DNA from: Mobula hypostoma | Lineage: Eukaryota | Assembly: GCF_963921235.1 (NCBI RefSeq) | Contig: NC_086101.1 | Span: forward strand, 15,872,001 to 15,936,000 | Reading direction: 5' to 3' | DNA length: 64,000 bases | Shown: in pieces, positions 470 to 44,655 of the stretch | Layout of the letters: each line of letters starts with the position of its first letter | Numbering within the stretch: the stretch's first letter is position 1 | Translations under genes and position numbers: made by a program | The notes under the pieces: generated by a model | Seen by the model: only the letters and a program-made list of their open reading frames with translations | Database searches by the model: none | What the model was told of the DNA's origin: nothing

Positions 470-835
470 GACGGGTTATTGGCACCTTAAAACCTGTTTC
501 TCCGGGCGGATGGGGCTCGCCAGCCATGGTTGGCAGCTCATCCAGGAAAAAGTAAAACTCTGATCTCAAACCTCCGCTGCCTTGCAGCTATACCCCCTCA
601 TGGGGAGGGCTTTTGGCATAAACCCAGAGGGAGAAATCCATAGCTGGAGTCCCCAAGGCAACCCTCCATTGAGCTGACACATTTATTTGAACCAAACTGA
701 GTTCAATGCTGACTGATGCTCTTGCTACGCTGCTGGTATCGGTCTCTACCATTCCTTTGGGTTCAACAGATGCATGGAGAGCGGGACTTGCTCTCCATAT
801 CGTACTGCCCTGGCTTGCTTATCTAGACAGCTAGG
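470..835 (+). mobile_element. RTE-clade-derived repeat (5'-end-like)
   Basis: ggttggcagctcatccaggaaaaagtaaaactctgatctcaaacctccgctgccttgc resembles RTE 5' regions from recall; second copy at 55210-55425. Confidence 0.4.
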
Positions 836-1082
836 AAGCAATATCCATGGTGAACTCTGTCCGACGGAGGCCACAACTCAACACAACTCAAAGTTCATCC
901 CAAAGGGGGATGCAGAGGGGCAGCTTTCCTCTCATGCAGATAGACAGTTGGACACTTCAGAACAGAGGAAGTATCTCCACTGAGACGCTGACTGCCCATT
1001 TCCCTCCACAGGTTCTACCTGACCCAGTCAGAGGTCCTTCAGCACCTTTGTGTGGTGTTGGGTTTTCCAGCGCATAGCGCAA

Positions 1083-1100
1083 CACCGCCCCCTGCTGGCC
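1083..1100 (-). promoter_or_regulatory. CTCF-like motif, copy A
   Basis: Minus strand GGCCAGCAGGGGGCGGTG matches the CTCF core CCASYAGRKGGCRS. Confidence 0.6.
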
Positions 1101-1532
1101 GGCACCCTTTCACTGCAACTCTGTCCTCTACTGATGGGAGTACAGCGCTGCTGGACCAGAGGGGAGAAAAGAACATCTCACTTTGTCTCTTTTCAAGGTT
1201 TAACAGTCCAACTGCATTATTATTACCAAACTATATATACCACATGCAACACTGACATGGAGACTATTGCAGGCAGTCGGAAAACAAGAAAAGCACAGTA
1301 GAATACACGATTAAAAAAGAACCCACACAGCCAAGACATTCAAACATCCAATGTGTGAAAAAAGAACAAATGGTGCAAACAATTAATAGTAAACAAGTAA
1401 CAGATAGAACATGAACTGCAGGGTCCCCTAAAGTGAGTCCACAGCCACAGAGCCAGTTGGGTGCTGAGAACCTCACGGAGTAGTGAGCTGAACACTGGTT
1501 TGCTCTTTGCCCTCGGCCTCGACACCTTAACC

Positions 1533-1860
1533 TGTTGCAATGCCACGTGGCGAATGAGGCGAACCCAAGTGCAGGACACAGGCACGGAGATTGAGGATGC
1601 TTACACGGGCGTAAACGCCGAACAGTGAACAGGAGGGATCTTGACACGGAGCCCTGACATGGAGCCTTGACTCAGAAACCTTGAAACTGGAGCTAAACTT
1701 AGAACAAACGGCAAGGTTCTTAAAACTGCAGTTGCTGATGGAAACCCGGTGTGCCGTCATCAAAGAAAATTAAAAGCAGTTGGAAAATTAACCGTCGGAA
1801 CTGTGGCACAATTGAAGGAAATTAGAGGACACTAGGGAATAAACGATCAGGATGGTGCCA
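1533..1860. mobile_element. Solo LTR (gypsy-type), shared with block B
   Basis: TG...CA ends; flanked by taacc/taatg (decayed TSD); same position as 58021-58472; related to the LTRs at 48771-49815. Confidence 0.7.
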
Positions 1861-5595: not shown

Positions 5596-8425
5596 TTCTA
5601 CGATTACGTAACCACCGACTGCGACTACCCAACAAAGCGACTCCCAAAAATCGGTGGTCCCCCTTTTTATACCGTTGGGATATGCCATCACGTGACGCTC
5701 ACAGGTAACAAAGTCATGGGACACTCACGAGAATCACGAGACACTCACGGGAATCGATACTGTGGACAGGTAACACCTCCCCCCCCACAAAAGAAAAGAA
5801 AATCTTGATCTATCAGGCACAACATTTTAACTTCAATTTACAAAATATACAATTGTATAAAATCTACAGAATGGCTAATACACATACACTTATCTTACAG
5901 CACCCTACAAACTAATATAACATATGGCAGGGGTGTTCACAAGTATCAGAATTCCACACCATTAATAAAAATATACGTTGCAAATTCAACATCTGGACAG
6001 ACAGTCTGCAATTACATTATCTTTGCCTTTAATGTGAGTTATTAAGAGATCATATTCCTGTAAAATTAAACTCCAATTCAGCAACCTTCTATTTTCCTTT
6101 TTCAGTTTACTCAAATATACCAATGCGTTATGATCGGTGAAAATCACGAGTGGTTTCTGAGTTGCGCCAACATACACATCAAATGTTGCAGAGCCAAAAT
6201 AAGGGATAATAATTCCTTTTCTATGGGTGAATAATTTCTTTGAGGCCCATTAAATTTCTTGGAAAAGTAAGCCACAGGATGATCAACATCATCATAAGTA
6301 TCCCTTCGTATTAACATTGCTCCTGCAGCCTCGTCACTGGCATCCACAGCTAGAGAAAATGGCTTGGAAAAATCAGGTGACCTGAGCACAGGTTGGTGAC
6401 ATAAGATAGCTTTCAATTTATGATATGCCTCCTGACAAGGTTCTGTCCAAACAAGTTTTTCACCCTTCGTCAGGAGCTTAGTGAATGGGAGAAAAATATC
6501 AGCAAAGTTCTTACAGAACTTGCGGTAATATCCTACGATTCCCAAGAATCTTCTGAGAGCCTTTTTATCGGTTGAAGTGGGAACCGCTAAAATTGCCTGA
6601 ACTTATGCCTGAACAGGAGCCAAACTGTCTGGACCCACAATGTAACCAAGATAGGTCACATTGAAATGGTCAGATACACTTTTAGCTAAGTTAACGGTAA
6701 GGTTAGCTTTTGAGAGCCTTTCAAACAACTTCTCCACTGCAGAGATATGTGCCTCCCAAGTGTAATTCCCTGTGACTAAATCATCATTAGAGGCATCTGT
6801 GTGTGATAACCCTTGAATTACAGAATTAATCATTCTCTGGAAGGTTCCTTGAGCATTCCTCATTCCAAATGCTGAACTTTGTATTCAGATAACCCAGATG
6901 GCGTTAAAAATGCATCGGTTTTTGTTATAACATTCACCTTTCTGTAATAAGCACAAAACCGAATACTACCATCTGGGTTAGGCACCGTGACACGAGTTGA
7001 ACTCCAATCCGAAGCAGAAGATCTAATAATATGATTTTCTAACATATACTTAATTTCTTGTTCGGCATGTGTAAATTTTTCCACGTTCATTCGATATGGA
7101 TGTTGCTTTACGGGTTTGGCCTTTCCAACATCTTGGTCATGTGAAGCTACTGTGGTTTTCTTTGGAATGTCTGGAATTAAATCCCTAAATTTCATAATTA
7201 ACTGCTTCATTTGCTGCCGCTGCTGTGGCTGTAGATGAGCCAATTTCTCATCAATATTTTCCAAAATTGTTGAATTTGTTAGTCTGGCAGAAATAATGTT
7301 CGGTTTAAAATAAGCCTCAGATGGATCAACTACCAAGTTCCCAGGGAGGTCAGACTCATTGTTATTGACAACAACAGTCATAGCGGTGGACTGTTTTTCA
7401 TATTGTGGTTTTATCAGGTTTACATAACAAAGCTGCGTTGTCCTTTGTCGATCCCGTGTTTTTACCACATAGTCCACATTATTAACTTTAGATATAATCT
7501 CGTAAGCACCATGAAATTTAGCTTGCAAAGGGTTCGTTTGCACAGGGTAAAGAACCAACACCTTATCTCCCGGCTTGAATGACAACATTCTAGCTTTTTT
7601 GTCATACCAAATTTTCCTTCTTTCCTGAGCAGATTTTAAATTTTCCCTTGCTATGCTGCAAGCTTTTTGAAGTCTCTCCTTAAAATTTATGACATAATCC
7701 AACAAACTAGTATGTAGTTCTTTGTTAACCCACTGTTCTTTTAACAATGCCAAAGTTGCTCGGACTCTGTGCCCAAACACAAGTTCGAAAGGACTAAAGC
7801 CTAGGGACTCCTGCACTGACTCCCTTACTGCAAACAAAAGCAAATGAACTTCTTCATCCCAATCCTTCTCATTTTCAACACAAAACGTCCTAATCATGTT
7901 TTTGAGAGTAGAACAGAACGTTTCTAAGGCCCCTTGTCATTCTGGATGGCACACAGACAATGTAATCTGTTTGGCTCCCAGTTTATGAACTACCTGTTGG
8001 AATAATCCAGACATAAAATTACTGCCTTGATCAGAATGGATTTCTTCAGCCAACACAAATAAAGCAAAAAAGTTTATGAGAGCCTTTGACACAGTTTTAG
8101 CATTTATATTCCTGAGAGGTGTTGCTTCTGGGAACCTAGATGCTGTACACATGATGGTCAGTAAATATTGACGGCCAGCTTTATTTTTTGGCAATGGGCC
8201 AACACAATCCACAACAACTTTAGAAAACCGTTCACCAAATGCAGGCATAGGTTGCAATGGGGCCACTGGGGTGACTTGATTAGGTTTACCCCCAACCTGA
8301 CAAGTGTGACAAGTTCGGCAAAACGTCGCCACATCTTTCCTCAACCCAGGCCAGAAAAAGTGTTTAAAAACCTCGTTCACAGTTTTATTCACACCAAGAT
8401 GGCCACCCAAGGGCATTCTATTATC
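4940..8425 (-). mobile_element. 5'-truncated Gmr1-like Ty3/gypsy LTR retrotransposon (IN-RT-RH, PPT, 3' LTR 4940-5775)
   Basis: Minus strand order: integrase (GHLGVNKT..CRTCHTCQ, VVVDCVGPLP, IHSDQGSNF), RT (PDGSIRFC..RKVN, MRNAQGTFQRMIN), RNase H (VDASD, IEKELL, TDHNAL), PPT at 5776-5786, then an LTR with TG/CA ends; frameshifted. Confidence 0.85.
5545..5593. repeat. (CT)n microsatellite inside the LTR
   Basis: Uninterrupted tc run. Confidence 0.95.
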
Positions 8426-8453
8426 CAAACAGAAACAGAAATCCTTGTCATAT

Positions 8454-8537
8454 TCATGACCCAACTGCTGAGAGCATGGTTGAGGACCTGCTTCTCTCCC
8501 AATTTTCCTCACCACCTGTTGGTTCAGTCCCATCTTC
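8454..8537 (-). CDS. Putative terminal cytoplasmic exon (EDGTEPTGGEENWERSRSSTMLSAVGS*), frameshifted relative to paralog
   Basis: NAGNAG acceptor ccgtgttttcagtag|GAA conserved in the paralog at 63143; phase 0 matches the upstream exon. Confidence 0.55.
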   Translation of the reverse strand, partial: EDGTEPTGGEENWERSRSSTMLSAVGS

Positions 8538-9415
8538 CTACTGAAAACACGGAGGAGCCAAATTAATTCTGTTAAGTAGTGTGGCCTGACTGCTGGGAGG
8601 AAAGAACCAACTCCTCTGTAGTGGCAAGATACAGGAGGAGGATATTCGGCCCATCTAGCCTGTACTGGCTCTTGGAAAAACCAGCTTATCCCACTGTTCC
8701 ACTCTCAGTCCATCGACCTTCAGATGCTCTTCCAGCTCCTTTCTGCTCGATGTGACTGAATATAATCCCAGGTTCCATTAATTCACTGAGTGAAAAAAGC
8801 CCCTCTTGTCTCGTAAGGTCAGCAAAAAGGTTTTCTGGCCCATCGTGTCCATGCCAGTAATCAAACTGATCCTACCCTCACCGATTTTACCCTCTTTGCA
8901 TGCCTGAGAGCTCCTCCTCCACCAGACTCCGCCACTCATCTACGCAATTGGATAACTTACAATGGCCAATTATCCTACTGACACAACTCGCACATCGCTG
9001 GGGTCTGGGAGGCACAAATCATTGTCCTTATCGATAAGGTGAGAAGTTTCAGAATCACTTGTGTCAAGTGGCCTCTGATGTACACTCTCCCAGTAGAAAG
9101 CAGTTTTAGTTCCCACAGTTGTGTGAACACTCATGGTCTGGAATTTCTAGTTATTCTAGATTCAAGGGAATACAGGCCTCATCTACTCAATCTCCCCTCT
9201 CAGTTCTCCAGTTCAGGGATTTATTGGAAATAATTCAGCCACAGGGACAGGAAATGAAAAATGCTCTGACAGAGTTTAGCCCAATCACCACTTCATTTGA
9301 TTTTTTTCGAGCTAAGGGCCAAACACAGCTTAATTTAACATTTTTCAGCTACATTTTTGAATCTCTCCGGGATCTCACCACTTCCCCCGACTTCAGCAAA
9401 TGCTTTCTTTCTTAC

Positions 9416-9453
9416 TTGGTTTGTGTTTTCTTCAGGCTGGAGGCTACGTTTTG
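9416..9453 (-). CDS. 38-nt cytoplasmic micro-exon ((A)KRSLQPEENTNQ)
   Basis: Acceptor tttgtttctttctctaattcacag, donor CAA|GTAAGA; phase 1 to 0. Confidence 0.65.
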
Positions 9454-10247: not shown

Positions 10248-10421
10248 CTGCCAGAGGAAGTGGGGGAGGATGGGGTTAATGAGACCAGGACTCCGTGCTG
10301 GCGGCAGTTTATGTTTCTGTGGTGACTGGCGTCAGATGTTTACTTTACGAAACTCAACATCTGCCTCTTGTAGTGGGTGCATTGGGGCAGCCTCACAGTA
10401 TCTCCGTAATCCCACCATTAC

Positions 10422-11159: not shown

Positions 11160-11340
11160 AGCCCGCTGGTGGCGTAGTGGCATCAGCACTGGACTTCGGA
11201 GCGAAGGTTCCCGAGTTCAAACCCAGCCGGCTCCCCTGGCATGCTTTCCACCTGTGCTGGGTTGAGCATCAAGCTTGCAAATCGACCTAGTAAAAAAGAA
11301 ATTGCCTGCTACTGAAACGTCAACAGCAAAAAGTTGATGG
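11160..11340 (+). mobile_element. tRNA-derived SINE
   Basis: A-box-like tggcgtagtgg and B-box-like gagttcaaacc; no complete tRNA cloverleaf evident. Confidence 0.55.
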
Positions 11341-11972
11341 CTTATGCTGTCTTGTGAGTTTAAAGGCAATTTCTTCTTTTTTCTAGAGGAAATGCACTTA
11401 AGATGAGAGGGAGAAAGTTCAGAGGAGACTGTGGAGTAAGTGTTTTTTTAAACACACAGAAAATGGTAGCAGCCTGGAATGGTGCAGGTTGATATAGAAG
11501 TACATTTGAGAGGCTGTTAGATCATACAGACGGACACAGATACAGACACACACACACACACAGAGCCACTCATAAAGGCACACACAGTCACTCATACAGA
11601 CAGACACTCACACACACACACACATCACACATCACGCAGATACATACACTGACAGAAAGACACACACACAGACACTGTTTAAGGTGCTGATGATTTCTAT
11701 GTCTGCTGCCTTTTCACAAAAGGAGTTCTGGACTCCCGCTCCACTCTTGTGAAAACGTTGTTCCCAAAATTCTCTCCAATTCTTCCACCTATGATCTTTA
11801 CCTGACTCACGCACATCGAACGCTGTACAGTGAAATGTGTTGTTTGAGTCCTCAAACGACATAGTCCGAGGATTATGCTGGGCTGAAGGGCCTGTTTCTG
11901 TGCTGTGAGTCTCCATACTCAATGACTCTATGTATCCAGCCACAACTAGGCTAAGATAAGTAAGTAACTCAC

Positions 11973-12070
11973 TCCAAATCGCCATCTTCCACCGATGTTT
12001 TGGCAGGACCTTGGTATTTGGAGTAACTTGGATGTATCACTGCATACTGGATGCGCTCTACAGTGGGTAC
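11973..12070 (-). CDS. 98-nt cytoplasmic exon carrying an ITIM (VPTVERIQYAVIHPSYSKYQGPAKTSVEDGDL)
   Basis: Acceptor tctttttctccacaag, donor GGA|GTGAGT; phase 0 to 2; IQYAVI fits (I/V/L/S)xYxx(I/V/L). Confidence 0.7.
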
Positions 12071-14149
12071 CTTGTGGAGAAAAAGATTCGATTAGAATGA
12101 TCTGAGTACAATCAGCATGGAAATCTAAGCTTTTCACTGTAGGCACGGCAATTCAGTGAAGGATTAGATTAGACCAGGTCCATGTCTGCCCTGATGCTCC
12201 CCGAAGAGCCAGATCCAGAGCCAAGGGATACGACAGCCAATCACATCCCACATGATTGTAGCTGAAACGTCTGGAAAAATCTTGCCAAGCTGGCCGATCA
12301 ACAAAATTTCCTAATATCCCATCCTTCCCATAGCTGTCTGCCTCCAAATTCCACCCCTCTCTGTCATCTGCCGAGCATTATCTGCCTGTTATCCAGCAGC
12401 CCCGTCCAGTCACCTCCGTCACACCCTCATCTCTTTGTACAGGCCATCTCCACTTCCAAGCCCTGGTACAGGATTCAGGGTTTTGACAGGAAAAAGTCCC
12501 ACACCACCACCCCCCACCACAGAGGCTGCTCGACCCGATGAGTCCTCCAGCAGATTGCTTGACACTCCAGATTCTAGCATTTGCCTTCTCTTGTGTCTCC
12601 AGTTAGTTAGTTACACATCATGTCACAGAATAAAATTCAGCCCACCAGATCAATGCCAGCCTGCAATATTTTCTCTCCAATATTCCCAGACCCAGATTCC
12701 ATGGCCCACCTTTGCAATTTACAGCGGACTATCAAGTTATGATCGGGATGTTGGAGGAAAAGTACAGCACATGAGACTGATTAACAAGATAAGACCCCGT
12801 GGTATAACAGGAGAGATACTAACATGGTAGAAGATTGGCTGATTGACAAGAGGGTTGGAAGGTTTGAATAAAGGGGGCCAATTCTAGTTGACCATTTAAA
12901 CTGCCTAGTCCCATCGACCATCATCTGGACCAAAGCCATCCATCCCACTGCATTCCAAGTACCTATCCAAACTTCTCTTAACCATTGAAATTGAGCTTCC
13001 ATGCACCACTTGCACTGGCAGCTTGTTCCGCATTCACATGACCCGCTGACAGAAGAAGTCATATTGAATATGGATCTCTGGATTTTTGTGGCAACAGCTC
13101 TCAGTTCCAGCCACAAATTTTCCAGAACATTCGCCCAATCCACAATAAATTACATCAACTTCTACTCTTGGTTCAGGGTGTTGGGTCTCACACACAAAAC
13201 GCTGGAGGAACTCAGCAGGCCAGGCAGCATCTAAGAAAAGAGTACAGTCGACGATTTGAGCCGAGACCCTTTAGGAAGACTGGAGAAAAAAAGCTGAGGA
13301 GTAGATTTAAAAGGTGGGGGGAGGGGTGAAACCTGAATGGGGAGGGGATGAAGTAAAGAGTTGGGAAGTAAATTGGTGAAAGAGACAGAAGGTCCTGGAA
13401 GAAAGAAAAGGGGAGAAGTACCAGAGGACGGCAATGGGCAGACATGGAGATAAGGTGAGAGAGGGAAATGGGAATGGGGAATGATGAAGGAGAGTGGGGG
13501 GCATTACCAAAAGTTCAAGAAATTGATGCTGATGCCATCATTTCGGTGGCTACCCAAACAGAATATAAAGTGTTGCTCCTCCAACCCTTTGGGCGCGTTG
13601 CTTGGATTTCCAGCATCTGCAGATTTTCTCTTGTTTGAGGGTGTTGGGTCTGGTCATTTAGAATCGACATTCTTTGAAAGGCAAGAATGAAACAGAAAAG
13701 GTAGTAGCTACAATCGTTTTGCTAAGATTTACAAGAAAAAATGAACGCACAAAGAAAAGACAAAGGGAAATAAATGGTGATTGCCTCAGATTTAGACGAG
13801 AGAAAACAACATCCCAGTGACAGCAATGAACCTATAAAATAGACAGACTCAAGTGGCATGGTAACTGCTGTATAGAAACTTCTAGAAGCCTTTAGAAAAA
13901 TACAGAATCAGCTGTAGTCAAATTACTAGAAAATTTACTGAACGATTTCACCTGTATAGGTGATTATATAAAAATGCAAGCAAGCATAGGAAAGTAAATT
14001 TACAAGGAAAGCACTAGACTAATATCCAACAAGAAGCAGCCCAGTGGGAATGTGGGGAGAACAGGTTGCAGGGGATCAAGTGGAAGAATTGGGGCGGACA
14101 GACATGAACAGGCTGAATGGTCTCCTATTTGTCAAGGATATGAACTACA

Positions 14150-14930
14150 TGCTATATATATATGGGCAGACTATTATTTAAATGGGGAGAGAATTCAAAG
14201 TTCTGAGATGCAACTGGACTTGGGAGTCCTCGTACAGGATACCCTTAAGGTTAACCTCCAGGTTGAGTCAGTGGTGAAGAAGGCGAATGCAATGTTGGCA
14301 TTCATTTCTAGAGGAATAGAGTATAGGAGCAGGGATGTGATATTGAGGCTCTATAAGGTGCTGGTAAGACCTCACTTGGAGTACTGTGGGCAGATTTGGT
14401 CTGCTTATTTAAGAAATGATGTGCTGACGTTGGAGAGGGTACAGAGAAGATTCACGAGAATGATTCCAGAAATGAGAGGGTTAACGTATGAAGAATGTTT
14501 GTCTGCTCTTGGACTGTATTCTTTGGAGTTTAGAAGAATGAGGGGGGACCTCATAGAAACATTTCGAATGTTGAAAGGCATAGACAGAGTGGATGTGGCA
14601 AAGTTGTTCCCCATGATGGGGGAGTCTAGTACGAGAGGGCATGACTTAAGGTTTGAAGGGCGCCCATTCAGATGAGAGATACGAAGAATTTTTTTTTAGC
14701 CAGAGGGTGGTGAATCTATGGAATTTGTCGCCACGGGTGGCAGTGGAGTCCAAGTCATTGGGTGTCTTTAAGGCAGAGATTGATAGGTATCTGAGTAGCC
14801 AGACCATCAAAGGCTATGGTGAGAAGGCGGGGGAGTGGGACTAAATGGGAGAATGGATCGGCTCATGATAAAATGGTGGAGCAGACTCGAATGGCCGACT
14901 TCTGCTCCTTTGTCTTATGGTCTTGGTCTT
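14150..14930 (+). mobile_element. CR1 LINE 3' end
   Basis: LYKVLVRPHLEYC..LERVQRRFTRM..RGDLIETF, typical of the CR1 ORF2 C-terminus. Confidence 0.9.
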
Positions 14931-14939
14931 ATGGAATTC

Positions 14940-16000
14940 AACAGATTCATTACCTTCTGGCTAAAGAAATTTCTACTCATCTCTGTTCTAAATGTACATC
15001 CCTCTATTCTGACGCTGTTCTCTCTGGTCCTAGATTCCACCACTACGGGAACAATCCTCTCTGCCTTGGCCTTTCAATATTCATAGAGTTATAGAGAAGC
15101 ACAGCACAGAAAATGAACCTTCGGACATCTAACCATTTAAGCTGCCTACTCCCATCAACCTGTACAGGGACTATAGCCCTCTAGGTTCCTACTATTCATG
15201 TCCAAACTTCTCTTAAACTTTGAAGTCGATCTCGTGTGGAGCACTTGCACTGGCAGCTCATTCCACACTCTCATGACCATCTGAGTGAAGAGGTTTCCCC
15301 CCATGTTCCCTTAAACTTCTCATCTTTCACCTTTAAGCCATGAGAAATGGTTATAATCCCAGCCAACCTCAATGGAACAAAGCCTGCTTTTAATCATCCT
15401 ATCGATATCTCTCATAATTCTATAGATTTCAATGAGATCCCCCTTTGTTGTTCCAAGTTCCAGGGAGTACAGGCCCAGAGCCATAAAATGCTCCTCATAC
15501 CAAAAGCTTTTCATTCTGGATCATTCTCTTCAACCTCCTCTGGACTCTATCCAGTGCCAACACATCTTTTCTTAGATATGGGGCCCAATACCCCAAGTGC
15601 AGTCTGACCAATGCCTTATAAAGCCTCAGTATCACAAAGTTGCTTTTATATTCTAATCCTCTTGAAATGAATGCTAACATTGCATTTGCCTTCCTGACTA
15701 CTCAGTGGCATTTGCCACTGACTCAATCTGTAAGTCCACCTTTGGGAATCCTGCACAAGTTGCGCCTTTAATTTTGAATTTTATCCCCATTTAGAAAATA
15801 GTCTATGCATTTATTCCTTCTACCAAAGTTCATGACCGTACACTACTTTACACTATATTCCACCTGCCACTTTACCCATTCTGTCAGAGCCCCTGCTTCC
15901 TTAACATTACCTGTCCCTCCATCTATTATTGTATCATCTGGAAACTTCGCCACAACCCAATGAACTCTGCTATTCAAATTGTTATTTGAACTTAAAGCTG
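14940..16000 (-). mobile_element. Decayed CR1 fragments
   Basis: MLAFISRGLEYKS..LYKALVRLHLGY motif on minus. Confidence 0.75.
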
Positions 16001-16734
16001 TTCACCCTCTCAACCCCAGATCCATTGATGTCAAGAGGGGTTAGCCTGTCTCCATTCCACCTGTAATCCACAACCAGCTCGTTTGTTTTTGCGACATTGA
16101 GGGAGAGGTTGTTTTCTTTACACCACTGTGTCAGAGAGATGACTTATTCTCTGTAGGCTCATTATTATTTGAGATAAGGCCAATCAATGTAGTAGTACCA
16201 GCAAATTTAATTAACAGATTGGAGCTGTGGGTGGGTATGCAGAGAGTAAAAGAGTCCATTTACAGTCAAACATGAAGAAACAGCAACATACTGGATGAAT
16301 TCCTCTGTCATTAACTATTAAGAACAGTACATAGTATTATAGTCCCAACATTATCATCAAACTCACAGACAAAGGGGGTGCTGTTGTAGTGTGAAGGACT
16401 GATCTCTACCTTGCTGTGGCCAGGCGGTAACTCCCAGACACCTTCTCGTGCCTACCCTTTGAAGAGGATCCATCTCTGGGCCATCAGAAAACTTTTCTGA
16501 CACCATTACTGTCCTCATCAACTCTGGAGAACCCCATCGACTGCCACCAAACTTATAGTTTGCTTATTCCACACTGCTCATTTCTACCTCCTATCCAAGA
16601 TCTACAAACTTGGGTAGGCTTATTGTCTCCGCCTACTCCTGTCCCACTGAACACATGTTGTCTTTCCTCAAGCAACACACATCAAAGTTGCTGGTGAACG
16701 CAGCAGGCCAGGCAGCATCTATAGGAAGAGGCGC

Positions 16735-16770
16735 AGTCGACGTTTCAGGCCGAGACCCTTCGTCAGGACT
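16735..16770 (-). ncRNA. Minimal type-I hammerhead ribozyme motif
   Basis: agtc-CUGACGA-agg gucucgg ccu-GAAAC-GUC-gacu; stems I and II pair; stem III is a palindromic ACGU. Confidence 0.75.
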
Positions 16771-17816
16771 AACTGAAGGAAGAGTGAGTAAGGGATTTGA
16801 AAGCTGGAGGGGGAGGGGGAGATGCAAAATGATAGGAGAAGACAGGAGGGGGAGGGATGGAGCCGAGAGCTGGACAGGTGATAGGCAAAAGGGGATACGA
16901 GAGGATCATGGGACAGGAGGTCCGGGAAGAAAGACGGGGGGGGGGGGGATGACCCAGAGGATGGGCAAGAGGTATATTCAGAGGGACAGAGGGAGAAAAA
17001 GGAGAGTGAGAGAAAGAATGTGTGCATAAAAATGAGTAACAGCTGGGGTACGAGGGGGAGGTGGGGCCTAGCGGAAGTCAGAGAAGTCAATGTTCATGTC
17101 ATCAGGTTGGAGGCTACCCAGACGGAATATAAGGTGTTGTTCCTCCAACCTGAGTGTGGCTTCATCTTTACAGTAGAGGAGGCCGTGGATAGACATGTCA
17201 GAATGGGAATGGGATGTGGAATTAAAATGTGTGGCCACTGGGAGATCCTGCTTTCTCTGGCGGACAGAGCGTAGATGGTCAGCAAAGCGGTCTCCCAGTC
17301 TGCGTCGGGTCTCACCAATATATAAAAGGCCACATCGGGAGCACCGGATGCAGTATATCACCCCAGTCGACTCACAGGTGAAGTGATGCCTCACCTGGAA
17401 GGACTGTTTGGGGCCCTGAATGGTGGTAAGGGAGGAAGTGTAAGGGCATGTGTAGCACTTGTTCCACTTACACGGATAAGTGCCAGGAGGGAGATCAGTG
17501 GGGAGGGATGGGGGGGACGAATGGACAAGGGAGTTGCGTAGGGAGCGATCCCTGCGGAATGCAGAGGGGGGGGGGAAGGGAAAGATGTGCTTAGTGGTGG
17601 GATCCCGTTGGAGGTGGCGGAAGTTACGGAGAATAATATGTTGGACCCGGAGGCTGGTGGGGTGGTAGGTGAGGACCATGATCCTCTCGTATCCCCTTTT
17701 GCCTATCACCTGTCCAGCTCTCGGCTCTATCCCTCCCCCTCCTGTCTTCTCCTATCATTTTGCATCTCCCCCTCCCCCTCCAGCTTTCAAATCCCTTACT
17801 CACTCTTCCTTCAGTT

Positions 17817-17852
17817 AGTCCTGACGAAGGGTCTCGGCCTGAAACGTCGACT
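17817..17852 (+). ncRNA. Minimal type-I hammerhead ribozyme motif
   Basis: Same motif in the opposite repeat arm; predicted cleavage after C17848. Confidence 0.75.
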
Positions 17853-19369
17853 GCGCCTCTTCCTATAGATGCTGCCTGGCCTGCTGCGTTCACCAGCAAC
17901 TTTGATGTGTGTTGCTTGAATTTCCAGCATCTGCAGAATTCCTGTTGTTTGTCTTTCCTCAACTCCATTCTAGCCCCCTTGGTTCAGTTCCTTCCCACAT
18001 ACATCTGTGACACTTCTCATGCTTTCGATCTCCTCTTGCTCTCAATTCCTTGTGCCTGACCACCTCATTTTCACCACGGATGCAGTGTCCCTAAGCAGGC
18101 TTATCCTCCATCAAGAAAGCATTAACGGTCTTTACTTCTTCCTCAGTAGAAAAGCCATCTCGTGCCCCTCCACCACCGCCCTTCTCCGCCTTGAGGAACT
18201 GATCCTCACTCTCAACAACTTTTCCTTTGGCTCCTCCCACTCGAGGATCAATGGGTTACCATGGGCCTCGGCTAGGCCTGCCTTTTTGTTGGCTGTGTAG
18301 ACCATCCATGATTCAAGCCTTCCCCGGTAATGCTTCCCAACTCTTCCTCCACTGCATTGGCGCTGCTTCATGCACCCATGCTGAACTTGTCAATTTCATC
18401 AGCTTTGCCTCCAACTTCCACCCTGCCCTCAAATTCACTTGACCTATTTCTGACACCTCCCTCCCTTTACCTGATCTCTCTGTCTCCATCTTTGAAGACA
18501 ACCTGTCGATTGACAACTTTTAAAAACCTATCGATTCCAATTTATCTTGACCGTACTCTCCCTGTCCTCTCTCCTGTAAAAATTCACTTTTCTCAGTTCT
18601 TTCGTCTCTGCCATATCTGTTCCCAGGATGCGACTTTCCTTTCCGGGACATCAGAGATGTCCTCCTTCTTCAACGAACACGTACCCTTTCCTACACCATT
18701 GATGTGGCCCTCACCAACATCCCTTCCATTTCCCAAACATCCACGCTCACCCCATCTTCCTGCCGCCTTAACCGTGATAGAGCTCCGCCTGTCTTTACCT
18801 ACCACCTTTGACTGGATTCAACACATGATCCTCTGCACCTTCTGCCACCTCCAAAAGGATCCTACCACCAAACACATCTTTAAATCCCTCTCTCTCCCTC
18901 CATGATTCCCTTGTCTATTCAACCCCTCCTACTAATCTCCCTCTTGGCACTTATCCCCGCAAGCGGCCAAAGTGCTACACCTGCCCATTCACCTCCTCAC
19001 TCACCTCCATTCAATCCTTCCAGGTGAGGCAACACTTCACCTGCGAATCTGCTGGGGTTGTCTATTGTGTCTGCTGCTCCTGATGCAGCCTCCTCTAGAC
19101 TGGTGAGACCCTCCGTAAATAGGGGATCCTTCGTTGAGCATCTCCACTCCATCCGCCAAAGGCAGAACTTCCCAGTGGTCAAAGATTTTAATTCCCATTC
19201 CCATTTCTGTTCTGAAATGTTGGTGCGTGGCCTCCTAATTATGCCATGAGAAGACCACCCTCGGTGTGCAGGAGCAACACCTTATATTCCATCTAGGTGG
19301 CCTCCAACCTGATGGCATGAATATCAATTTCTCCTTCCGGTAAAAAAGAATTGCCCTCCTACTCCCATA

Positions 19370-22300
19370 GAAACCATAGAAACTACAGCACAAAAACAGG
19401 CCTTTTGGCCCTTCTTGGCTGTGCCGAACCATTTTCTGCCTAGTCCCACTGACCTGCGCACAGACCATATCCCTCCATACACCTCCCATCCATGTATCTG
19501 TCCAATTTATTCTTAAATGTTAAAAAAGAAGCCACATTTACCACCTCGTCTGGCAGCTCATTCCATACTCCCACCACTCTCTGTGTGAAGAAGCCCCCTC
19601 TAATGTTCCCTTTAAACTTTTCCCCCCTCACCCTTAACCCATGTCCTCTGGTTTTTTTCTCCCCTTGCCTCAGTGGAAAAAGCCTGCTTGCATTCGCTCT
19701 ATCTATACCCATCATAATTTTTTATACCTCTAACAAATCTCCCCTCAATCTTCTATGCTCCAGGGAATAAAGTCCTAACCTATTCAACCTTTCTCTGTAA
19801 CTGAGTTTCTCAAGTCCCGGCAACATCCTTGTAAACCTTCTCTGCACTCTTTCAACCTTACTTATATCCTTCCTGTAATTTGGTGACCAAAACTGAACAC
19901 AATACTCCAGACAACAGGAATTCTGCAGATGCTGGAAATTCAAGCAACACACATAAAAGTTGCTGGTGAACGCAGCAGGCCAGGCAGCATCTCTAGGAAG
20001 AGGTGCAGTCGACGTTTCATGCCGAGACCCTTCGTCAGGTCGGAGGGTCTCGGCCTGAAACGTTGACTGCACCTCTTCCTAGAGATGCTGTCTGGCCCAC
20101 AATACTCCAGATTCGGCCTCACCAATGCCTTATACAACCTCATCATAACATTCCAGCTCTTATACTCAATACTTCCATTAGTAAAGGCCAATGTACCAAA
20201 AGCTCTCTTTACGACCCTATCTACCTGTGACGCTACTTTTAGGGAATTTTGTATCTGTATTCCCAGATCCCTCTGTTCCACTGCACTCCTCAGTGCCTTA
20301 CCATTAACCCTGTATGTTCTACCTTGGTTGTCCTTCCAACGTGCAATACCTCACACTTGTCTGTATTAAACTCCATATGCCATTTTTCAGCCCATTTTTC
20401 CAGCTGGTCCAAGTCCCTCTGCAGGCTCTGAAAACCTTCCTCACTGTCTCCAATCTTTGTATCATCAGCAAACTTGCTGATCCAATTTACCACATTATCA
20501 TCCAGATCATTGATATAGATAACAAATAACAATGGACCCAGCACTGATCCCTGTGGCACACCACTAGTCACAGGCCTCCACTCAGAGAAGCAATTCTCTA
20601 CCACCACTCTCTGGCTTCTTCCATTGAGCCAATGTCTAATCCAATTTACCACCTCTCCATGTCTATCTAGCGACTGAATTTTCCTAACTAACCTCCCATG
20701 CAGGACCTTGTCAAAGGCCTTACTGAAGTCCACGTAGACAATATCCACTGCCTTCCCTTCATCCACTTTCCTGGTAACCTCCTTGAAAAACTCCAATAGA
20801 TTGGTCAAACATGACCGACCACGCACAAAGCCATGTTGACTCTCCCTAATAAGTCCCTGTCTATCCAACTGCTTGTAGATTCTGTCTCTTAGTACTCCCT
20901 CCAATAACTTACCTACTACCGACGTTAAACTTACCGGCCTATAATTTCCCGGATTACTTTTCGATCCTTTTTTAAACAACGGAACAACATGAACCACTCT
21001 CTAATCCTCCGGCACCTCACCTGTAGACAGCGACATTTAAAATATTTCAGCCAGGGCCCCCGCAATTTCAACACTAGTCTCCTTCAAGGTCCGAGGGAAT
21101 ACCCTGTCAGGTCCCGGGGATTTATCCACTTTAATTTTCCTCAAGGCAGCAAGGATCTCCTCCTTTTCGATCTGTACAGTTTCCATGATCTCACTACTTG
21201 TTTCCCTTAATTCCATAGACTTCATGCCAGTTTCCTTAGTAAATACAGATGTAAAAAACCTATTTAAGATCTCCCCTATTTCCTTTGGTTCTGCACATAG
21301 CCGAGCACTCTGATCTTCAAGAGGACCAATTTTATGCCTTACAATCCTTTTGCTCTTAATATACCTGTAAAAGCTCTTTGGATTATCCTTCACTTTGACT
21401 GCCAAGGCAACCTCATGTCTTCTTTTAGACCTCGTGATTTCATTCTTAAGTATTTTCTTGCACTTCTTATACTCCTCAAGCACCTTATTTACTCCCTGCT
21501 TCCTATACATGTCATATAACTCCCTCTTCCTCTTTATCAGAGTTGCAATATCCCTTGAGAACCAAGGTTCCTTATTCCTATTCACTTTGCCTTTAATCCT
21601 GACAGGAACATACAAATTCTGCACTCTCAAAATTTCTACTTTGAAGGCTTCCCACCTACCGATCACATCCTTGCCAGAGAACAACCTGTCCCAATCCACG
21701 CTTTTTAGATCCTTTTTCATTTCTTCAAATTTGGCCTTCTTCCAGTTTAGAACCTCAACCCTAGGACCAGATCTATCCTTGTCCATGGTCAAGTTGAAAC
21801 TAATGGTGTTATGATCACTGGAACCAAAGTGCTCCCCTACACAGACTTCTATCACTTGTCCTAACTCATTTCCTAACAGGAGATCCAATATTGCATCCCC
21901 TCTAGTTGGTCCCTCTATTTATTGATTTAGAAAACTTTCCTGAACACATTTTCCAAACTCTAAACCATCTAGACCCCTAACAGAATGGGAGTCCCAATCA
22001 ATATATGGAAAATTAAAATTCCCTACCACCACAACTTTATGTTTCCTGCAGTTGCCTGCTATCTCTCTGCAGATTTGCTCTTCCAATTCTCATTGACTAT
22101 TGGGTAGTGCGTAATACAATCCCACTAATGTAGCCATACCTTTCCTGTTCTCAGCTCCACCCATAAGGACTCAGTAGACAAGCCCTCTAATCTGCCCTGC
22201 CTGAGCACTGCTGTAATATTTTCCCTAACAAGCAATGCTACTCCCCCACCTTTCATTCCTCTGCCTCGATCACATCTGAAACATCGGAACCCTGGAATAT

Positions 22301-22600
22301 TAAGCTGCCAGTCCTGCCCCTCCTGTAGCCAAGTTTCACTAATTGCTGTAACGTCATAATACCACATGTCAATCCACGCCCTCAATTCATCCGCCCTCCC
22401 CGCAATACTCCTAGCATTGAAATATATACACCTCAGAAGATTTTTACCACCACTCACAACCTTTCTATTAGCGGATTTGTTTGAACTTTTAACATCATTT
22501 ATTTTCACCCCAGCCACACTGTCAGCTCTGGCACTCTGGTTCCCATCCCTCTGCAAATCTAGTTTAAAGCCTCCCCAATAGCACTAACACACCTCCCTGA
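19370..22600 (-). mobile_element. CR1 LINE with near-complete, disrupted ORF2
   Basis: Endonuclease (YFNARSI, ISETWLQEG), RT ([25 protein letters not shown]) and 3' tail near 19370. Confidence 0.9.
19912..20097. mobile_element. Short palindromic Penelope-derived element inserted in CR1
   Basis: Two head-to-head pseudo-LTR ends; 14-bp TSD cacaatactccaga at 19898-19911 and 20098-20111. Confidence 0.8.
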
Positions 22601-23749
22601 AAGGATATTGGTCCCCCTGTAGTTCCCCTCATCTTCAATTCCCAATCTGGCTTCTTATCTCCTCTCACCTGCCTATCAACTCCCCCCCCCACCCCCGGGT
22701 CACCTCCTCCTTCCCTTTCTCCTGTGGTCCACTCTCCTCTCCTATCAGATTCCTTTCTCTCCAGCCCTTTATCTTTCCAAACCACTTGGCTTCACCTATC
22801 ATCTTCTAGCTATCCTCCTTCCCCACCCCCTCACCTTTCTATTCTGATGTCTTCCTCCTTCATTTTCAGTCCCAAGGAAGAGTCTTGGTGCGAAGAGTCG
22901 ACTGTTTATTCATTTCCATAGATGCTACCTGACCTGCTGAGTTCCTCCAGCAATTTGTGTGTGTTGCACAGTTTTATCATATTGTAGCATTGGTAATATT
23001 CTAATTAATCCTATATTTCATTTAAATACCCGATTTGTTATTTAGCTAGTCTTTTTTTTAACATATTTTTATCTATTTCTAAGGAACTTTTACTAATTGG
23101 GGCAGCCACCTAATTGGGTCAAAATCTACTAGTCCCAATGTGTTCTAATTAAATGGAATCCACTGTACATTAAACAACACACAGAAAATACTGGAGAAAC
23201 TTCAATACTGAAGTAGCTTCTCGGTCCAAAATGTCCACTGTTTTCTCTTTTCTGTAGATACTGCCTGACCTGCTAAGTTCTTCCAGCATTTTGTGTGTGT
23301 TTCTTCGGATTTCCAGCATCTGCAGATTTACTCTTGTTTGTGAATCCACTGTGTATAATACAGTATTATATCTATAAAAATGGTATGTGTGTGCAGTATA
23401 GAAATATTATATTTATCATTTGCACAATTCGTCATCAGTATTTATTTATTTACTTATTTATGGAGATAATGCCTAGAATAGGCCCTTCATGCCGTGCCAC
23501 ACAGCAACCCCCGATTTAACCCTGTTTATGTATAGATTTTCATAAATTCTATTGTATTTCTTTATCTTTGCCTGTAGGAAGTTGAATCTCAAAGTCATAT
23601 ATACCCTGTCATGAATGGGGCAGGTGGAGTTAGGCCTGTCAAGGTCTTAAGAAGTAAGGCTAAACGATAATCCACCCAGTGATGTGTCCTCCGTTGGGCT
23701 CTAAATAGAGCGTTTGAGGGACTGGAGGATGCAGTGGTAATGCAAATGT

Positions 23750-24545
23750 TGAAGTCCATCCCAAAGGGTGATGCAGAGGGACAGCTTTCCTCTGATGCAG
23801 ATGGTCAAATGGGCACTTCAGAGTGGAGGAAGCTTCTCCACCTGTAGACGCTGACTGCCCATTTCCCTCCACAGGTTCTACCTGACCCAGTGAGGGGTCC
23901 TTCAGCACCTTTGTGTGCTGTTGGGTTTTCCAGCGCATAGCGCAACACCGCCCCCTGCTGGCCGGCACCCTTTCACTGCAACTCTGTCCTCTACTGACGG
24001 GAGAGCAGCACTGATGGACCAGAGGGGAGAAAAGCGCATCTCACTTTGTCTCTTTTCAAGGTTTAACAGTCCAAAGTACATCATTATTATCACAGTATAT
24101 ATACCACAATGCAACCCTGAGATGGAGATTGTTTCAGGCAGACATAAAACTAAAAAAAACAGTAGAATCCACGATAAAAAACAAACAACAAAGACCTTCA
24201 GACAAGCAATGTGCAAAAAAAAAAGAATAAACTGCAAATAATAAAAATTGACACACAGAACATGAACTGCAGAGTGTCCAAAAGTGAGTCCATGGCCACA
24301 GATCCAATTCAGTGCTGAGAACCTCACGGATCAGTGAGCTGAACATCAGTTGGTCTTTTGCCCTCGACTTTGACACCTTAACTTTTTAAATCTGACTTGT
24401 GTATAAATCCACTAAACATTGGTTCATTTTCCGCTCTTGGTCCTCGGCTATGCTGCTTCAATCCGGCCCAAAGTCCACTCCAGCAATGTCTGCTGTGGCC
24501 CAGCTGTATTCTTGAGGGTCCGAGTCATTTGGGTGTACTTAAAAC
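23750..24545. repeat. Third, older copy (block C) of the duplicated flank
   Basis: Similar to ~890-1530 and 57390-58020 and continues past the LTR site without the LTR. Confidence 0.85.
23946..23963 (-). promoter_or_regulatory. CTCF-like motif, copy C
   Basis: Identical to copy A (GGCCAGCAGGGGGCGGTG). Confidence 0.6.
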
Positions 24546-24689
24546 AAAACTGACATGTTCTTGATTGGTTTTGGTGTCAAAGGTTACGGGGAAGGCAGGT
24601 CGACGGGGTCGAGAGGGAAAAGAAAACACCCAATACGGAATGGTGGAGCAGACTTGATGGGCCGAATGACCAACTCCTACTATGTCAGA

Positions 24690-27030
24690 CGCTGGTGGGA
24701 GTTGTGTACAGGCCACCTAACAGTAGTAGTGAGGTCGGAGATGGTATTAAACAGGAAATTAGAAATGTGTGCAATAAAGGAACAGCAGTTACAATGGGTG
24801 ACTTCAATCTACATGTAGACTGGGTGAACCAAATTGGTAAAGGTGCTGAGGAAGAGGATTTCTTGGAATGTATGCGGGATGGTTTTTTGAACCAACATGT
24901 CGAGGAACCAACTAGAGAGCAGGCTATTCTGGGCTGGGTTTTGAGCAATGAGGAAGGGTTAATTAGCGATCTTGTCGTGAGAGGCCCCTTGGGTAAGAGT
25001 GACCATAATATGGTGGAATTCTTCATTAATATGGAGAGTGACATAGTTAATTCAGAAACAAAGGTTCTGAACTTAAAGAAGGGGAACTTTGAAGGTATGA
25101 GACGTGAATTAGCTAAGATAGACTGGCAAATGACACTTAAAGGATTGACGGTGGATATGCAATGGCAAGCATTTATAGGTTGCATGGATGAACTACAACA
25201 ATTGTTCATCCCAGTTTGGCAAAAGAATAAATCAAGGAAGGTAGTGCACCCGTGGCTGACAAGAGAAATTAGGGATAGTATCAATTCCAAAGAAGTAGCA
25301 TACAAATTAGCCAGAGAAAGTGGCTCACCTGAGGACTGGGAGGAATTCAGAGTTCAACAGAGGAGGACAAAGGGCTTAATTAGGAAGGGCAAAAAAGATT
25401 ATGAGAGAAAACTGGCAGAGAACATAAAAACGGACTGTAAAAGCTTTTATAGATATGTAAAAAGGAAAAGACTGGTAAAGACAAATGTAGGTCCCCTGCA
25501 GACAGAAACAGGTGAATTGATTATGGGGAGCAAGGACATGGCAGACCAATTGAATAATTACTTTGGTGGCTAATGTAACCCCAATTTTTAAAAAAGGAGG
25601 GAGAGAGAAACCGGGGAATTATAGACCGGTTAGCCTAATGTCGGTGGTGGGGAAACTGCTGGAGTCAGTTATCAAGGATGTGATAACAGCACATTTGGAA
25701 AGCGGAGAAATGATCGGACAAAGTCAGCATGGATTTGTGAAAGGAAAATCATGTCTGACGAATCTCATAGAATTTTTTGAGAATGTAACTAGTAGAGTGG
25801 ATAGGGGAGAACCAGTGGATGTGGTATATTTGGATTTTCAAAAGGCTTTTGACAAGGTCCCACACAGGAGATTAGTGTGCAAACTTAAATCATACGGTAT
25901 TGGGGGTAAGGTATTGGTGTGGGTGGAGAATTGGTTAGCAGACAGGAAGCAAAGAGTGGGAATAAACGGGACCTTTTCAGAATGGCAGGCGGTGACTAGT
26001 GGGGTACCGCAAGGCTCAGTGCTGGGACCCCAGTTGTTTACAATATATATTAATGACTTGGATGAGGGAATTAAATGCAGCATCTCCAAGTTTGCAGTGA
26101 CACGAAGCTGGGCGGCAGTGTTAGCAGTGAGGAGGATGCTAAGAGGATGCAGGGTGACTTGGATAGGTTGGGTGAGTGGGCAAACTCATGGCAGATGCAA
26201 TTTAATGTGGATAAATGTGAAGTTATCCACTTTGGTGGCAAAAATAGGAAAACAGATTATTATCTGAATGGTGGCCGATTAGGAAAAGGGGAGGTGCAAC
26301 GAGACCTGGGTGTCATTATACACCAGTCATTGAAAGTGGGCATGCAGGTATAGCAGGCGGTGAAAAAGGCGAATGGTGTGCTGGCATTTATAGCGAGAGG
26401 ATTCGAGTACAGGAGCAGGGAGGTACTACTGCAGTTGTACAAGGCCTTGGTGAGACCACACCTGGAGTATTGTGTGCAGTTTTGGTCCCCTAATCTGAGG
26501 AAAGACATCTTTGCCATAGAGGGAGTACAAAGAAGGTTCACCAGATTGATTCCTGGGATGGCAGGACTTTCATATGAAGAAAGACTGGATGAACTGGGCT
26601 TGTACTCGTTGGAATTTAGAAGATTGAGGGGGGATCTGATTGAAACGTATAAGATCCTAAAGGGATTGGACAGGCTAGATGCAGGAAGATTGTTCCCGAT
26701 GTTGGGGAAGTCCAGAACGAGGGGTCACAGTTTGAGGATAGAGGGGAAGCCTTTTAGGACCGAGATTAGGAAAAACTTCTTCACACAGAGAGTGGTGAAT
26801 CTGTGGAATTCTCTGCCACAGCAAACTGTTGAGGCCAGTTCATTGGCTATGTTTAAGAGGGAGTTAGATATGGCCCTTGTGGCTACAGGGGTCAGGGGGT
26901 ATGGAGGGAAGGCTGGGGCGGGGTTCTGAGTTGGATGATCAGCCATGATCATAATAAATGGCGGTGCAGGCTCGAAGGGCCGAATGGCCTACTCCTGCAC
27001 CTATTTTCTATGTTTTCTATGTTTTCTATG
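24690..27030 (+). mobile_element. CR1 LINE, 5'-truncated ORF2 with frameshifts
   Basis: ORFs 24695-25573, 25563-26267 and 26360-26929 cover EN to C-terminus; (tttctatg)-like tail at ~27005-27030. Confidence 0.92.
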
Positions 27031-27065
27031 TCTTAAGATCTTAAACTGATCGGAGAGGTAAAAGA

Positions 27066-27193
27066 TCAAATGCTATTACTTTCTGCTCTGAGGGTTTTGC
27101 TATGAAACAGGATGCTGCAGAGCAGGATGCTCCCTTGTATTCCAAAGGCCGCTAACAGGATCACCAGGTGAATCACGATGGCTGTCAGTTTGC
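27066..27193 (-). CDS. Transmembrane exon ((R)KLTAIVIHLVILLAAFGIQGSILLCSILFHSKTLRAESNSI*)
   Basis: Acceptor ttgtttctccccccacag; phase 1; ~23-aa hydrophobic stretch; stop at 27068-27066, or internal donor GAAA|GTAATA at 27080. Confidence 0.8.
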
Positions 27194-27993
27194 CTGTGGG
27201 GGGAGAAACAACTCAGAACACATGAGCACAAATGGGCCATTTGGCCCTTCGAGACTGGTGAGGAATGCAATGATATGGTAGATGACCTGGAAGTGTAGCC
27301 ACTGATGAAATCATTCCTGTCACTGCCGCAGCTCCTCCTCCCAATTCCAGGACAGAGGATGAGCGAGAGGTGCTAAAATCACATCCAGCATTGATCTTTG
27401 AGTAACATTTATCCCAGTCCTACACTAATCCCATTTATTTTCCTATTAATTTTACTAATAACTGATCCTCCCCACCATCCTTTCAAATCCCCTGAGTTTC
27501 TACCACTTCCGAACACACTGGGAGCAATTTACAGCAATCAGTTAAACCACCAACCCATACATCTTTGCTACGTGGGAGGAAATCAGAGCACCCGAAGGTG
27601 AGGGTTGGCCACACTGACACAGGAATAATCCATTGAAGATAGGACAGGACAGAGAGGGAGGCAGACAGTATGTGACCCACTGCCCCACCTAGTCCCAGTG
27701 AGGACAGAGGACAGTGTGTGACCCACTGACTTGCTCTATAATCTGCACACTGAGCCAATCATTGTTGATGTGTTGATAAGTGTTTGATCTCCAGCCAGTC
27801 ACCCCAATGTAATTCTTGTTATCTGTAGTCTCCCATCTACATTCAGCAATGGTCAGTCAGTCCCGTTGGTGATGACACTGGAAGTGAAGGTAGGAAATCG
27901 GACAGGGCTCCACGAATAGAAAGTTGATGGGATGGGTGGATGTTGGTGGGTGGTAATAAGCTCAGTATTGTCTCGGGCTGGGGAACCACTCAC

Positions 27994-28323
27994 GTGTGTG
28001 ACTCACTGTCAGCCATACTCCTTCTCCGATTTCCTCGCCAATCCCGTCTATCCGTACTTTGCAGTAGTACATTCCTGAATTGCTCTCCCTCACGTCCACC
28101 AGCTTTATGGAAGCTTTGAAGGAATCCTCCTGGTCAGGCCCAAGGACGCGCCCTGAGAACTCTGCCGTCCCGTTGGAGACTTCGGATGTGTTCCTGTACC
28201 AGCTGTAGAACACAGCGTCTCCGGTGTGATTGGCATTATGGCTACAGACCATGAGCACTGTTTCACCCTCACCTGCAAATATTCTGGCCTGGCCTTGCGT
28301 AACCGTGAAGCTCTTGCTTTTTC
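27994..28323 (-). CDS. NCR3-like: Ig V (VJ-type) exon 2 of NKp30-like receptor
   Basis: C-W-C core (MVC, SWY, YYC); EVSNGTAEFSGRV and KVRIDGIGEEIGEGVWLTV resemble NKp30 EVRNGTPEFRGRL and RVEVLGLGVGTGNGTRLVV; acceptor cccattgcag, donor C|GTGAGT; phase 1-1. Confidence 0.9.
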
Positions 28324-44316: not shown

Positions 44317-44655
44317 CTCTCACTGCGAGAATCGTCCCTGCCCCATACATTTTCCATTTTATTGTCTCCAACTTGCAGAAGTACATCCCAGTATCACTCG
44401 GCCGCACGTCCTTCAGTTGCATTGAAACATCTATGCTGTTAGTGGAGGGATCACCCCCTTGAGGTTTGAAGAAGCGGCCTCTGTACTCTGCTGTTTCATT
44501 GGTCACTTCTATTCCATTTTGGGCACCCTTGAACCAGTGGTATGACCATATCTTATTCGTGACATTGTGTCTGCATGGAATAACCACCGTCTCCCCTTCT
44601 GTGGCAACAATGCTGGACTTGTCCTGAATGACCACAAACTTCTCAGCACCAATGC
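44317..44655 (-). CDS. NCR3-like: Ig V (VJ-type) exon 1 of NKp30-like receptor
   Basis: IPC, YHW, YFC core; NGIEVTNETAEYRGRF; J-like YGAGTILAV; acceptor ccctgctttcag, donor G|GTAAGC; phase 1-1. Confidence 0.9.

Follow-up and report, generated by a model that had tools for sequence, protein, structure and literature searches.

A short-tailed NKp30-like receptor gene and probably orphaned ITIM exons in a receptor cluster of the ray Mobula hypostoma

We examined a stretch of 64,000 nucleotides of the lesser devil ray, Mobula hypostoma (contig NC_086101.1, positions 15,872,001 to 15,936,000; hereafter the window), which carries on its minus strand a receptor gene, here called gene Y, and, further along the same strand, a group of exons encoding a cytoplasmic tail with an ITIM (immunoreceptor tyrosine-based inhibitory motif). 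An earlier, sequence-only reading had set two explanations side by side: either one gene makes both a short-tailed, activating-type product and an ITIM-tailed product, or the gene ends behind its transmembrane (TM) exon, with the tail exons left as orphans of a deleted paralog. As rebuilt from the sequence, gene Y runs from 46201 to 27066 in four exons with an intact open reading frame of 279 residues (a slash marks a splice site):

46159..46201, minus strand: exon 1, ATG and signal peptide MEVGAILWLLTVSS; donor CCG/gtaagt; ends in phase 1
44317..44655, minus strand: exon 2, V1 domain; phase 1 to 1; acceptor ttcag/GCATTG, donor GAGAG/gtaagc
27994..28323, minus strand: exon 3, V2 domain; phase 1 to 1
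27080..27193, minus strand: exon 4, stalk end and TM segment; acceptor cacag/GCAAAC; reaches the phase-1 donor position of the family
27066..27079, minus strand: read-through past the presumed relic donor, GTAATAGCATT; adds S-N-S-I, then TGA at 27068-27066

All junctions of gene Y are canonical (donors gtaagt, gtaagc and gtgagt; cag acceptors behind pyrimidine-rich tracts), both immunoglobulin (Ig) exons are of the phase 1 to 1 type with the conserved Ig residues present, and the intron between V1 and V2 measures 16 kb. The V2 exon matches the Pfam V-set domain (E 9.5e-12), and its top four matches among solved structures in PDB are all human NKp30 (NCR3), with E values of 6-8e-8. The TM exon encodes RKLTAIVIHLVILLAAFGIQGSILLCSILFHSKTLRAE, and in its read-through form (27193-27066) it supplies the stalk end, the TM segment, a short tail and the stop. 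The resulting cytoplasmic tail is 12 residues long, HSKTLRAESNSI, and contains neither a tyrosine nor a signalling motif. The membrane core, LTAIVIHLVILLAAFGIQGSILLCSILF, holds one His and no Arg or Lys; an Arg-Lys pair stands at the outer membrane boundary, as it also does in the long-tailed family proteins P0151 and P0152. The short tail of the proposed activating-type product is thus present, but the charged residue expected of such a product is not, only His being found in the core, and on this ground we do not adopt the label 'activating-type'. Taken together, gene Y would be a complete receptor gene: a signal peptide is followed by two NKp30-like V domains, then by a membrane anchor and finally by the 12-residue tail. 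Upstream of its ATG, two minus-strand segments (46157-46281 and 48054-48149) are matched at 62-90% by N-terminal extensions, those of P0001 and of P0153, a predicted protein from Hemitrygon, so that the 5' untranslated or promoter region is conserved both among paralogs and across ray families.

Four tail exons lie at the other end of the region, and they were delimited as follows:

11973..12070, minus strand: tail exon T1 with the ITIM IQYAVI; phase 0 to 2; acceptor ctccacaag/GTACCC; 82% identity to P0002, 76% to P0152
10213..10247, minus strand: tail exon T2 (QDYGYDELNVT); phase 2 to 1
9416..9453, minus strand: tail exon T3 (AKRSLQPEENTNQ); phase 1 to 0
8400..8540, minus strand: terminal tail exon; tandem acceptor cag/TAG and tag/GAA

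In phase 0, T1 reads VPTVERIQYAVIHPSY..., and a stop upstream limits its acceptor to that single AG. The ITIM is in frame in phase 0 only, confirming that the ITIM exon starts at 12070 in this phase. From the first of its two acceptors the terminal exon gives an immediate stop (...EENTNQ-stop), the same as in P0002, while the sequence behind the second acceptor carries a 2-bp deletion relative to a paralogous copy at 63042-63711. Directly behind the terminal exon there is also an open frame (8300-8704, minus strand) that matches Integrase_H2C2, the zinc-binding domain of retroviral or Gypsy-type integrases, with an E value of 7e-14.

The TM exon had been described as either ending in phase 1 at 27080 (GAAA/GTAATA) or running on to the TGA with a tail of about 12 residues, and both options were confirmed on the minus strand. 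A TM exon ending in phase 1 and an ITIM exon starting in phase 0 do not fit each other directly. When 27080 is spliced straight to 12070, the product reads ...LRAE-STHCRAHPV... in a shifted frame and ends in a 51-residue tail (STHCRAHPV...SKT), which stops in T3 and contains no ITIM. An in-frame route would need a linking exon, and none belonging to the family was found. The donor AAA/GTAATA behind the TM exon scored -0.5, lower than all donors of the tail exons; the splice scores given here are rough, resting on consensus frequencies, and serve for ranking only.

The family itself indicates what such a link looks like. Close relatives were found when the V2 exon was used in a full HMMER scan, and further ones came from a word-index search. 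Two of the proteins recovered have the V-V-TM architecture with a long tail of about 150 residues, namely P0002 (M. hypostoma LOC134346462, 419 amino acids) and P0152 (Hypanus sabinus LOC132393824, 426 amino acids), and their ITIMs read IQYAVI and IHYAVI, respectively. In both, about 84 residues separate the TM exon from the ITIM exon. In P0002 this linker runs ...NSLLFQRQELSTLNDS...PEDELIYTPMQSLKTFSNSMDNGMD..., and behind it come the ITIM exon (VPTVENIQYAVIYPSYSK...), QDDGYDELNV and AKRSLQPEEATNQ. The linker would span several exons, and long-tailed members would carry their roughly 150 further residues, with YxxM, ITIM and YDEL motifs, on many small exons. P0002 aligns with the window in these segments (coordinates descending, as on the minus strand):

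46201-46157: leader, 15/15 residues identical
44659-44312: V1, 96.6% identity (tblastn)
28330-27995: V2, 87.5% identity
27197-27069: TM exon, ~60% identity (TM overall ~48-60%; 20/42 in the TM-exon comparison)
12073-11972: ITIM exon, 82% identity
10246-10217: next tail exon, 90% identity
9454-9416: following tail exon, 92% identity

Residues ~279-361 of P0002 have no match in the window. Consistent with this gap, tblastn with the linker regions of five family members recovered nothing over 8000-27300 at E values up to 200, and the conserved linker motifs YxPM, STLND, KTFSNSM and DNGMD were absent from all six frames of the whole window. The earlier statement that no convincing exon links the TM and ITIM exons therefore holds; its premise of one missing exon does not, because the family gap of ~84 residues points to several. 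In addition, P0002, P0151 and P0001 all lie on one 199-Mb record of GCA_963921235.1, and the cluster seems to be incompletely annotated in public records: the P0001 model has five V domains but lacks a TM segment, P0151 lacks the ITIM exon, and none of the annotated proteins matches gene Y.

A family member without a TM segment, P0004, helps to place the boundary. It joins V2 straight to 'DVQLSQRQD...', which aligns with 'NSLLFQRQE...' in P0002. The next exon of the family thus begins within the Asp/Asn codon, and the TM exon ends in phase 1 at GAAA/GT. On this alignment the GAAA/GT of the window is the homologous family donor. A likeness between 'NSI' in the read-through and 'NSL' in the long tails was also weighed as a sign of intron loss and was rejected, for the sequence that follows is unrelated and P0004 puts the boundary before that Asn.

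As a weak candidate for the link, a 26-nt segment (NVSATIMWD) had been put forward. It does exist at 12270-12245 on the minus strand, runs from phase 1 to 0 and has a poor donor, as described. Its acceptor and donor scored 0.4 and 0.1, compared with 1.8-5.4 and 1.9-7.0 for the real sites, and it has no homology to the family linker. The interval contains 1332 open AG..GT segments of length 3n+2, against ~806 in base-shuffled sequence. Given its poor splice sites and this number of comparable candidates, the segment carries no weight as a linking exon, and we rejected it as a chance occurrence.

Next, the TM exons of the family were compared, and they fall into two classes. The Hemitrygon akajei protein P0153, a submitter's GenBank gene prediction that has not been reviewed, ends ...RKLTHIVIHLVILLVAFGIQGSILLISILFRRKILRAENQGI-stop, with its stop codon at the same position as that of gene Y. 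The identities over the TM exon were:

Window and short-tailed P0153: 33/42
Window and long-tailed P0002, P0151 and P0152: 20-25/42
Within the long-tailed group (Mobula and Hypanus): 33-37/48

Among the class-specific residues is the His of the membrane core, which is Leu in the long-tailed proteins. Since each class has members in both Myliobatidae and Dasyatidae, the split into short and long forms predates the two families. Searches limited to the TM regions of P0002 and P0153 returned only members already known, with no more short-tailed relatives among them. The codon that spans the family donor is Ser (AGT) in the window but Asn (AAY) in P0153; read back through the genetic code, this predicts that Hemitrygon has no GT at the family donor position, in which case its short tail must be constitutive. 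Gene Y would accordingly belong to an old short-tailed class of the ray receptor family, in which the phase-1 donor after the TM exon is not productively used and translation would continue four codons into the former intron before it stops.

The flanking DNA was then analysed by comparing the window with itself. The segment 395-4941 pairs with 55138-60318 at 86-92%, and the region of the terminal tail exon (8432-8941) pairs with 63042-63711, so that a paralogous tail with its flank is found inside the window at 55138-63711. A block in these flanks occurs in three copies, two of them closely similar (A and B) and the third (C) partial:

831..1671, minus strand: block A, of the tail-exon unit; a CTCF-like motif spans 1084-1098; closely similar to block B
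57337-58159: block B
23752..24387, minus strand: block C, partial third copy of the inter-gene block; 84% to 891-1536, 82% to 57392-58024

The claim that block C is a copy of the usual 3' gene flank with its CTCF-like site is borne out by these matches and by an exact motif at 23947-23961. Copies A (1084-1098) and C each match the CTCF core consensus exactly, which makes two matches where 0.02 are expected. In the 5' part of the block, Kimura two-parameter (K2P) distances are 0.063 for A-B, 0.25 for A-C and 0.24 for B-C, and in the 3' core of ~300 bp they are 0.078, 0.088 and 0.078, respectively. The distance of about 0.08 among all three copies of the core (23752-24070, 831-1150 and 57337-57700), as against about 0.24 in the adjacent part of C, indicates that the core is conserved against its surroundings. 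Block C has almost no contig coverage (at most ~3 in bins 23682-24469), compared with hundreds to hundreds of thousands over transposable elements, which argues that it is not a high-copy transposable element. By its sequence features, the block may be a putative boundary element or insulator that closes each receptor gene unit.

Block C had been placed directly downstream of the TM exon apart from one CR1 element. A CR1-like long interspersed nuclear element (LINE) does lie between them, along with an older CR1 3' fragment and ~0.1-0.3 kb of other DNA, and with the young LINE discounted the gene Y stop is ~0.4 kb from block C. The elements in this part of the window are:

24695..27031, plus strand: CR1-like LINE with endonuclease and reverse transcriptase (Pfam Exo_endo_phos_2 and RVT_1), antisense to gene Y
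27004-27031: tandem repeat (TTTTCTATG)3, the 3' end of this LINE, 34 bp past the gene Y stop
24493-24680: older CR1 3' fragment, between the LINE and block C
12071..23751, minus strand: spacer from block C to the ITIM exon, largely transposon-derived; no family exon by tblastn or motif scans

Within the spacer are a LINE with endonuclease and reverse transcriptase (19440-22556), a GIY-YIG element (17071-17709) and CR1 fragments (14052-14898 and 15250-15700). The GIY-YIG frame (17071-17709, minus strand; nuclease match at E 3.4e-5) is surrounded by a 244-bp inverted repeat of 99.6% identity (16668-16911 and 17676-17919), and the whole, 16668-17919, is probably a young Penelope-like or related element. 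Contigs of each of the four same-species sequencing runs cover two transposon segments, 22894-23090 and 24667-27030, to an extreme depth, so that these LINE and short interspersed nuclear element families are abundant and probably transcribed. A search of 8000-28500 against Rfam found no family.

Taken together, these data favour the view that gene Y ends at 27066 and that the tail exons are orphaned, which we consider the probable state of the locus. Four observations carry it: the window has no linker exon of the family, the TM exon falls into the separate short-tailed class, which a second ray family shares, gene Y has an older block of its own, and the tail exons are accompanied by a younger flank. 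The second of the two original explanations is thereby preferred, with the end of the transcript as its inferred part: transcripts would end after the TM exon, leaving the tail exons unused. Gene Y would go with its own old block, copy C, and the tail exons with copy A, which would have been duplicated recently from the 3' end of the neighbour (B). The ITIM and YDEL exons from 12070 to 8400 would then form a truncated long-tail unit that stems from a more recent duplication and is placed past the CTCF-like block of gene Y itself; its origin would be a partial duplication, or else a duplication with subsequent loss of the 5' part. The pairing of short and long tails would in this case exist between genes and not between isoforms; that is, the contrast between ITIM-less and ITIM-bearing receptors with near-identical outer domains would be made by separate paralogous genes instead of alternative splicing. 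The mosaic identity of gene Y to P0002 (leader 100%, V1 96.6%, V2 87.5%, TM ~48-60%) fits this, being the classical signature of paired receptors that are kept alike in their outer domains (PMC3533184, PMC5701461).

Several observations weigh against this picture. The GT at the family donor position (27079) is still present in the window, and T1-T3 remain open in their own frame, with good splice sites and the ITIM kept. The short-tailed class is known from two sequences, gene Y and one unreviewed prediction. On the gene strand, the first ATTAAA past the gene Y stop comes 0.86 kb on, inside the antisense LINE, and the first AATAAA 3.6 kb on, just beyond block C. None of the annotated M. hypostoma proteins has the exon sequences of gene Y, which may thus be silent or a recent pseudogene. 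None of the sequencing runs searched was recorded as RNA. Over 22500-28400 the contigs of the four same-species runs, which are small and of uncertain type, fell on transposons only, with none on the V2 or TM exons, and the tail stretch had 0.01 of its words in three of these runs (X3, X4 and X13); this outcome speaks neither for nor against either splicing model.

Some of these points would be explained if gene Y were a dead or silent copy whose tail was lost in a recent rearrangement and whose frame has merely not yet decayed. We regard this as unlikely, though it is the likeliest of the alternatives and is compatible with a gene end at 27066. The missing annotation, the absence of contigs on the gene Y exons, and a LINE 34 bp past the stop with no canonical poly(A) signal nearby all speak for it. 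On the other hand, gene Y keeps four open exons with canonical splice sites and conserved Ig residues, and the same TM class and stop position recur in Hemitrygon, which argues for an old short form that was retained; the runs, being small and uncertain in type, make the lack of contigs weak proof of silence.

Also compatible with a gene end at 27066, and somewhat less likely again, is occasional leaky splicing straight from 27080 to 12070, whose frameshifted 51-residue tail without an ITIM would be a by-product and not a switch. Both sites exist, 12070 being the genuine acceptor of the family, and the shifted frame is open through T1 and T2 before it stops in T3; but the donor is weak, the splice would have to cross 15 kb and a putative insulator, and no RNA supports it.

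That one gene makes both tails, as first proposed, appears highly improbable: no in-frame path was found, and no transcript supports an ITIM-bearing isoform beside the ITIM-less one. Here, the GT at 27079 would sometimes be used, and the ITIM exon would be reached through an unrecognised exon of length 3n+2, either derived from a transposable element or the 26-nt segment. In its favour are the GT kept at the family donor position, the intact tail exons with their conserved ITIM, the 16-kb V1-V2 intron, which shows that long introns filled with transposable elements are normal in this gene, and a LINE-derived open segment at 22291-22140 with passable splice sites. Against these stand the absence of any homolog of a family linker exon in the window, the 26-nt candidate with its poor sites among 1332 chance candidates, the weak donor, a TM exon of the short-tailed type, in which the Hemitrygon member would have no GT, the conserved CTCF-like block between the TM and tail exons, and a tail flank copied more recently than the block of gene Y itself. 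The specific version in which certain cell types use the GT, with the ITIM frame restored across the 15-kb intron by a lineage-specific, possibly transposon-derived exon, seems to us the least credible of all; if it were true, a single locus would switch between two receptors, one ITIM-less and one inhibitory, that share their ligand-binding domains.

With the gene end at 27066 and orphaned tail exons as the preferred reading, gene Y can be set beside known systems. Like the paired receptors KIR2DS/KIR2DL, PILR beta/alpha, SIRP beta/alpha and Siglec-16/-11, it has a partner with near-identical outer domains (96.6% between its V1 and that of LOC134346462), a long tail with the ITIM in one member stands against a short tail in its partner, and the two are neighbouring paralogs in one cluster. 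KIR2DS2 retains relic ITIM sequence behind an early stop (PMC3533184), and gene Y would likewise have relic ITIM sequence behind its early stop; Siglec-11 and Siglec-16 undergo gene conversion that homogenises their ectodomains (PMC5701461), which the similar ectodomains of gene Y and its partner recall. However, the activating partners in such pairs, which associate with an ITAM adaptor (DAP12, FcR gamma or CD3 zeta), combine a short tail with an Arg or Lys in the TM segment (PMC3533184), whereas the membrane core of gene Y has neither of these residues, only His. Its host, a ray, and its tandem NKp30-like V domains also set it apart from these systems. As for NKp30 (NCR3) itself, which is the best match of the gene Y V-set, gene Y belongs to a multigene family of a cartilaginous fish, a group from which NKp30 homologs have reportedly been described (Flajnik et al. 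2012). Gene Y differs in having two tandem V domains instead of one and no Arg in the membrane core, while NKp30-like receptors couple to CD3 zeta or FcR gamma through an Arg of the TM segment or stalk; and the long-tailed ray members, unlike human NKp30, carry ITIM/YxxM tails. What is new here is the short- and long-tailed paired set in a ray NKp30-like two-V family; the kind of system is already known.

Paired receptors, which combine matching outer domains with signalling tails that are opposite or missing, are a recurring product of the conflict between hosts and pathogens and have been documented mostly in mammals and birds. The ray NKp30-like family would follow the same logic, with short- and long-tailed TM classes each represented in two ray families and ectodomains that are alike within a species. 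At this locus the loss of the tail would have left a readable record, made up of a relic donor, a stop four codons further along, the lack of linker exons, and ITIM exons left orphaned. The locus may thus serve as a useful example for the evolution of paired receptors and for the annotation of this cluster, within a known picture that it leaves unchanged.

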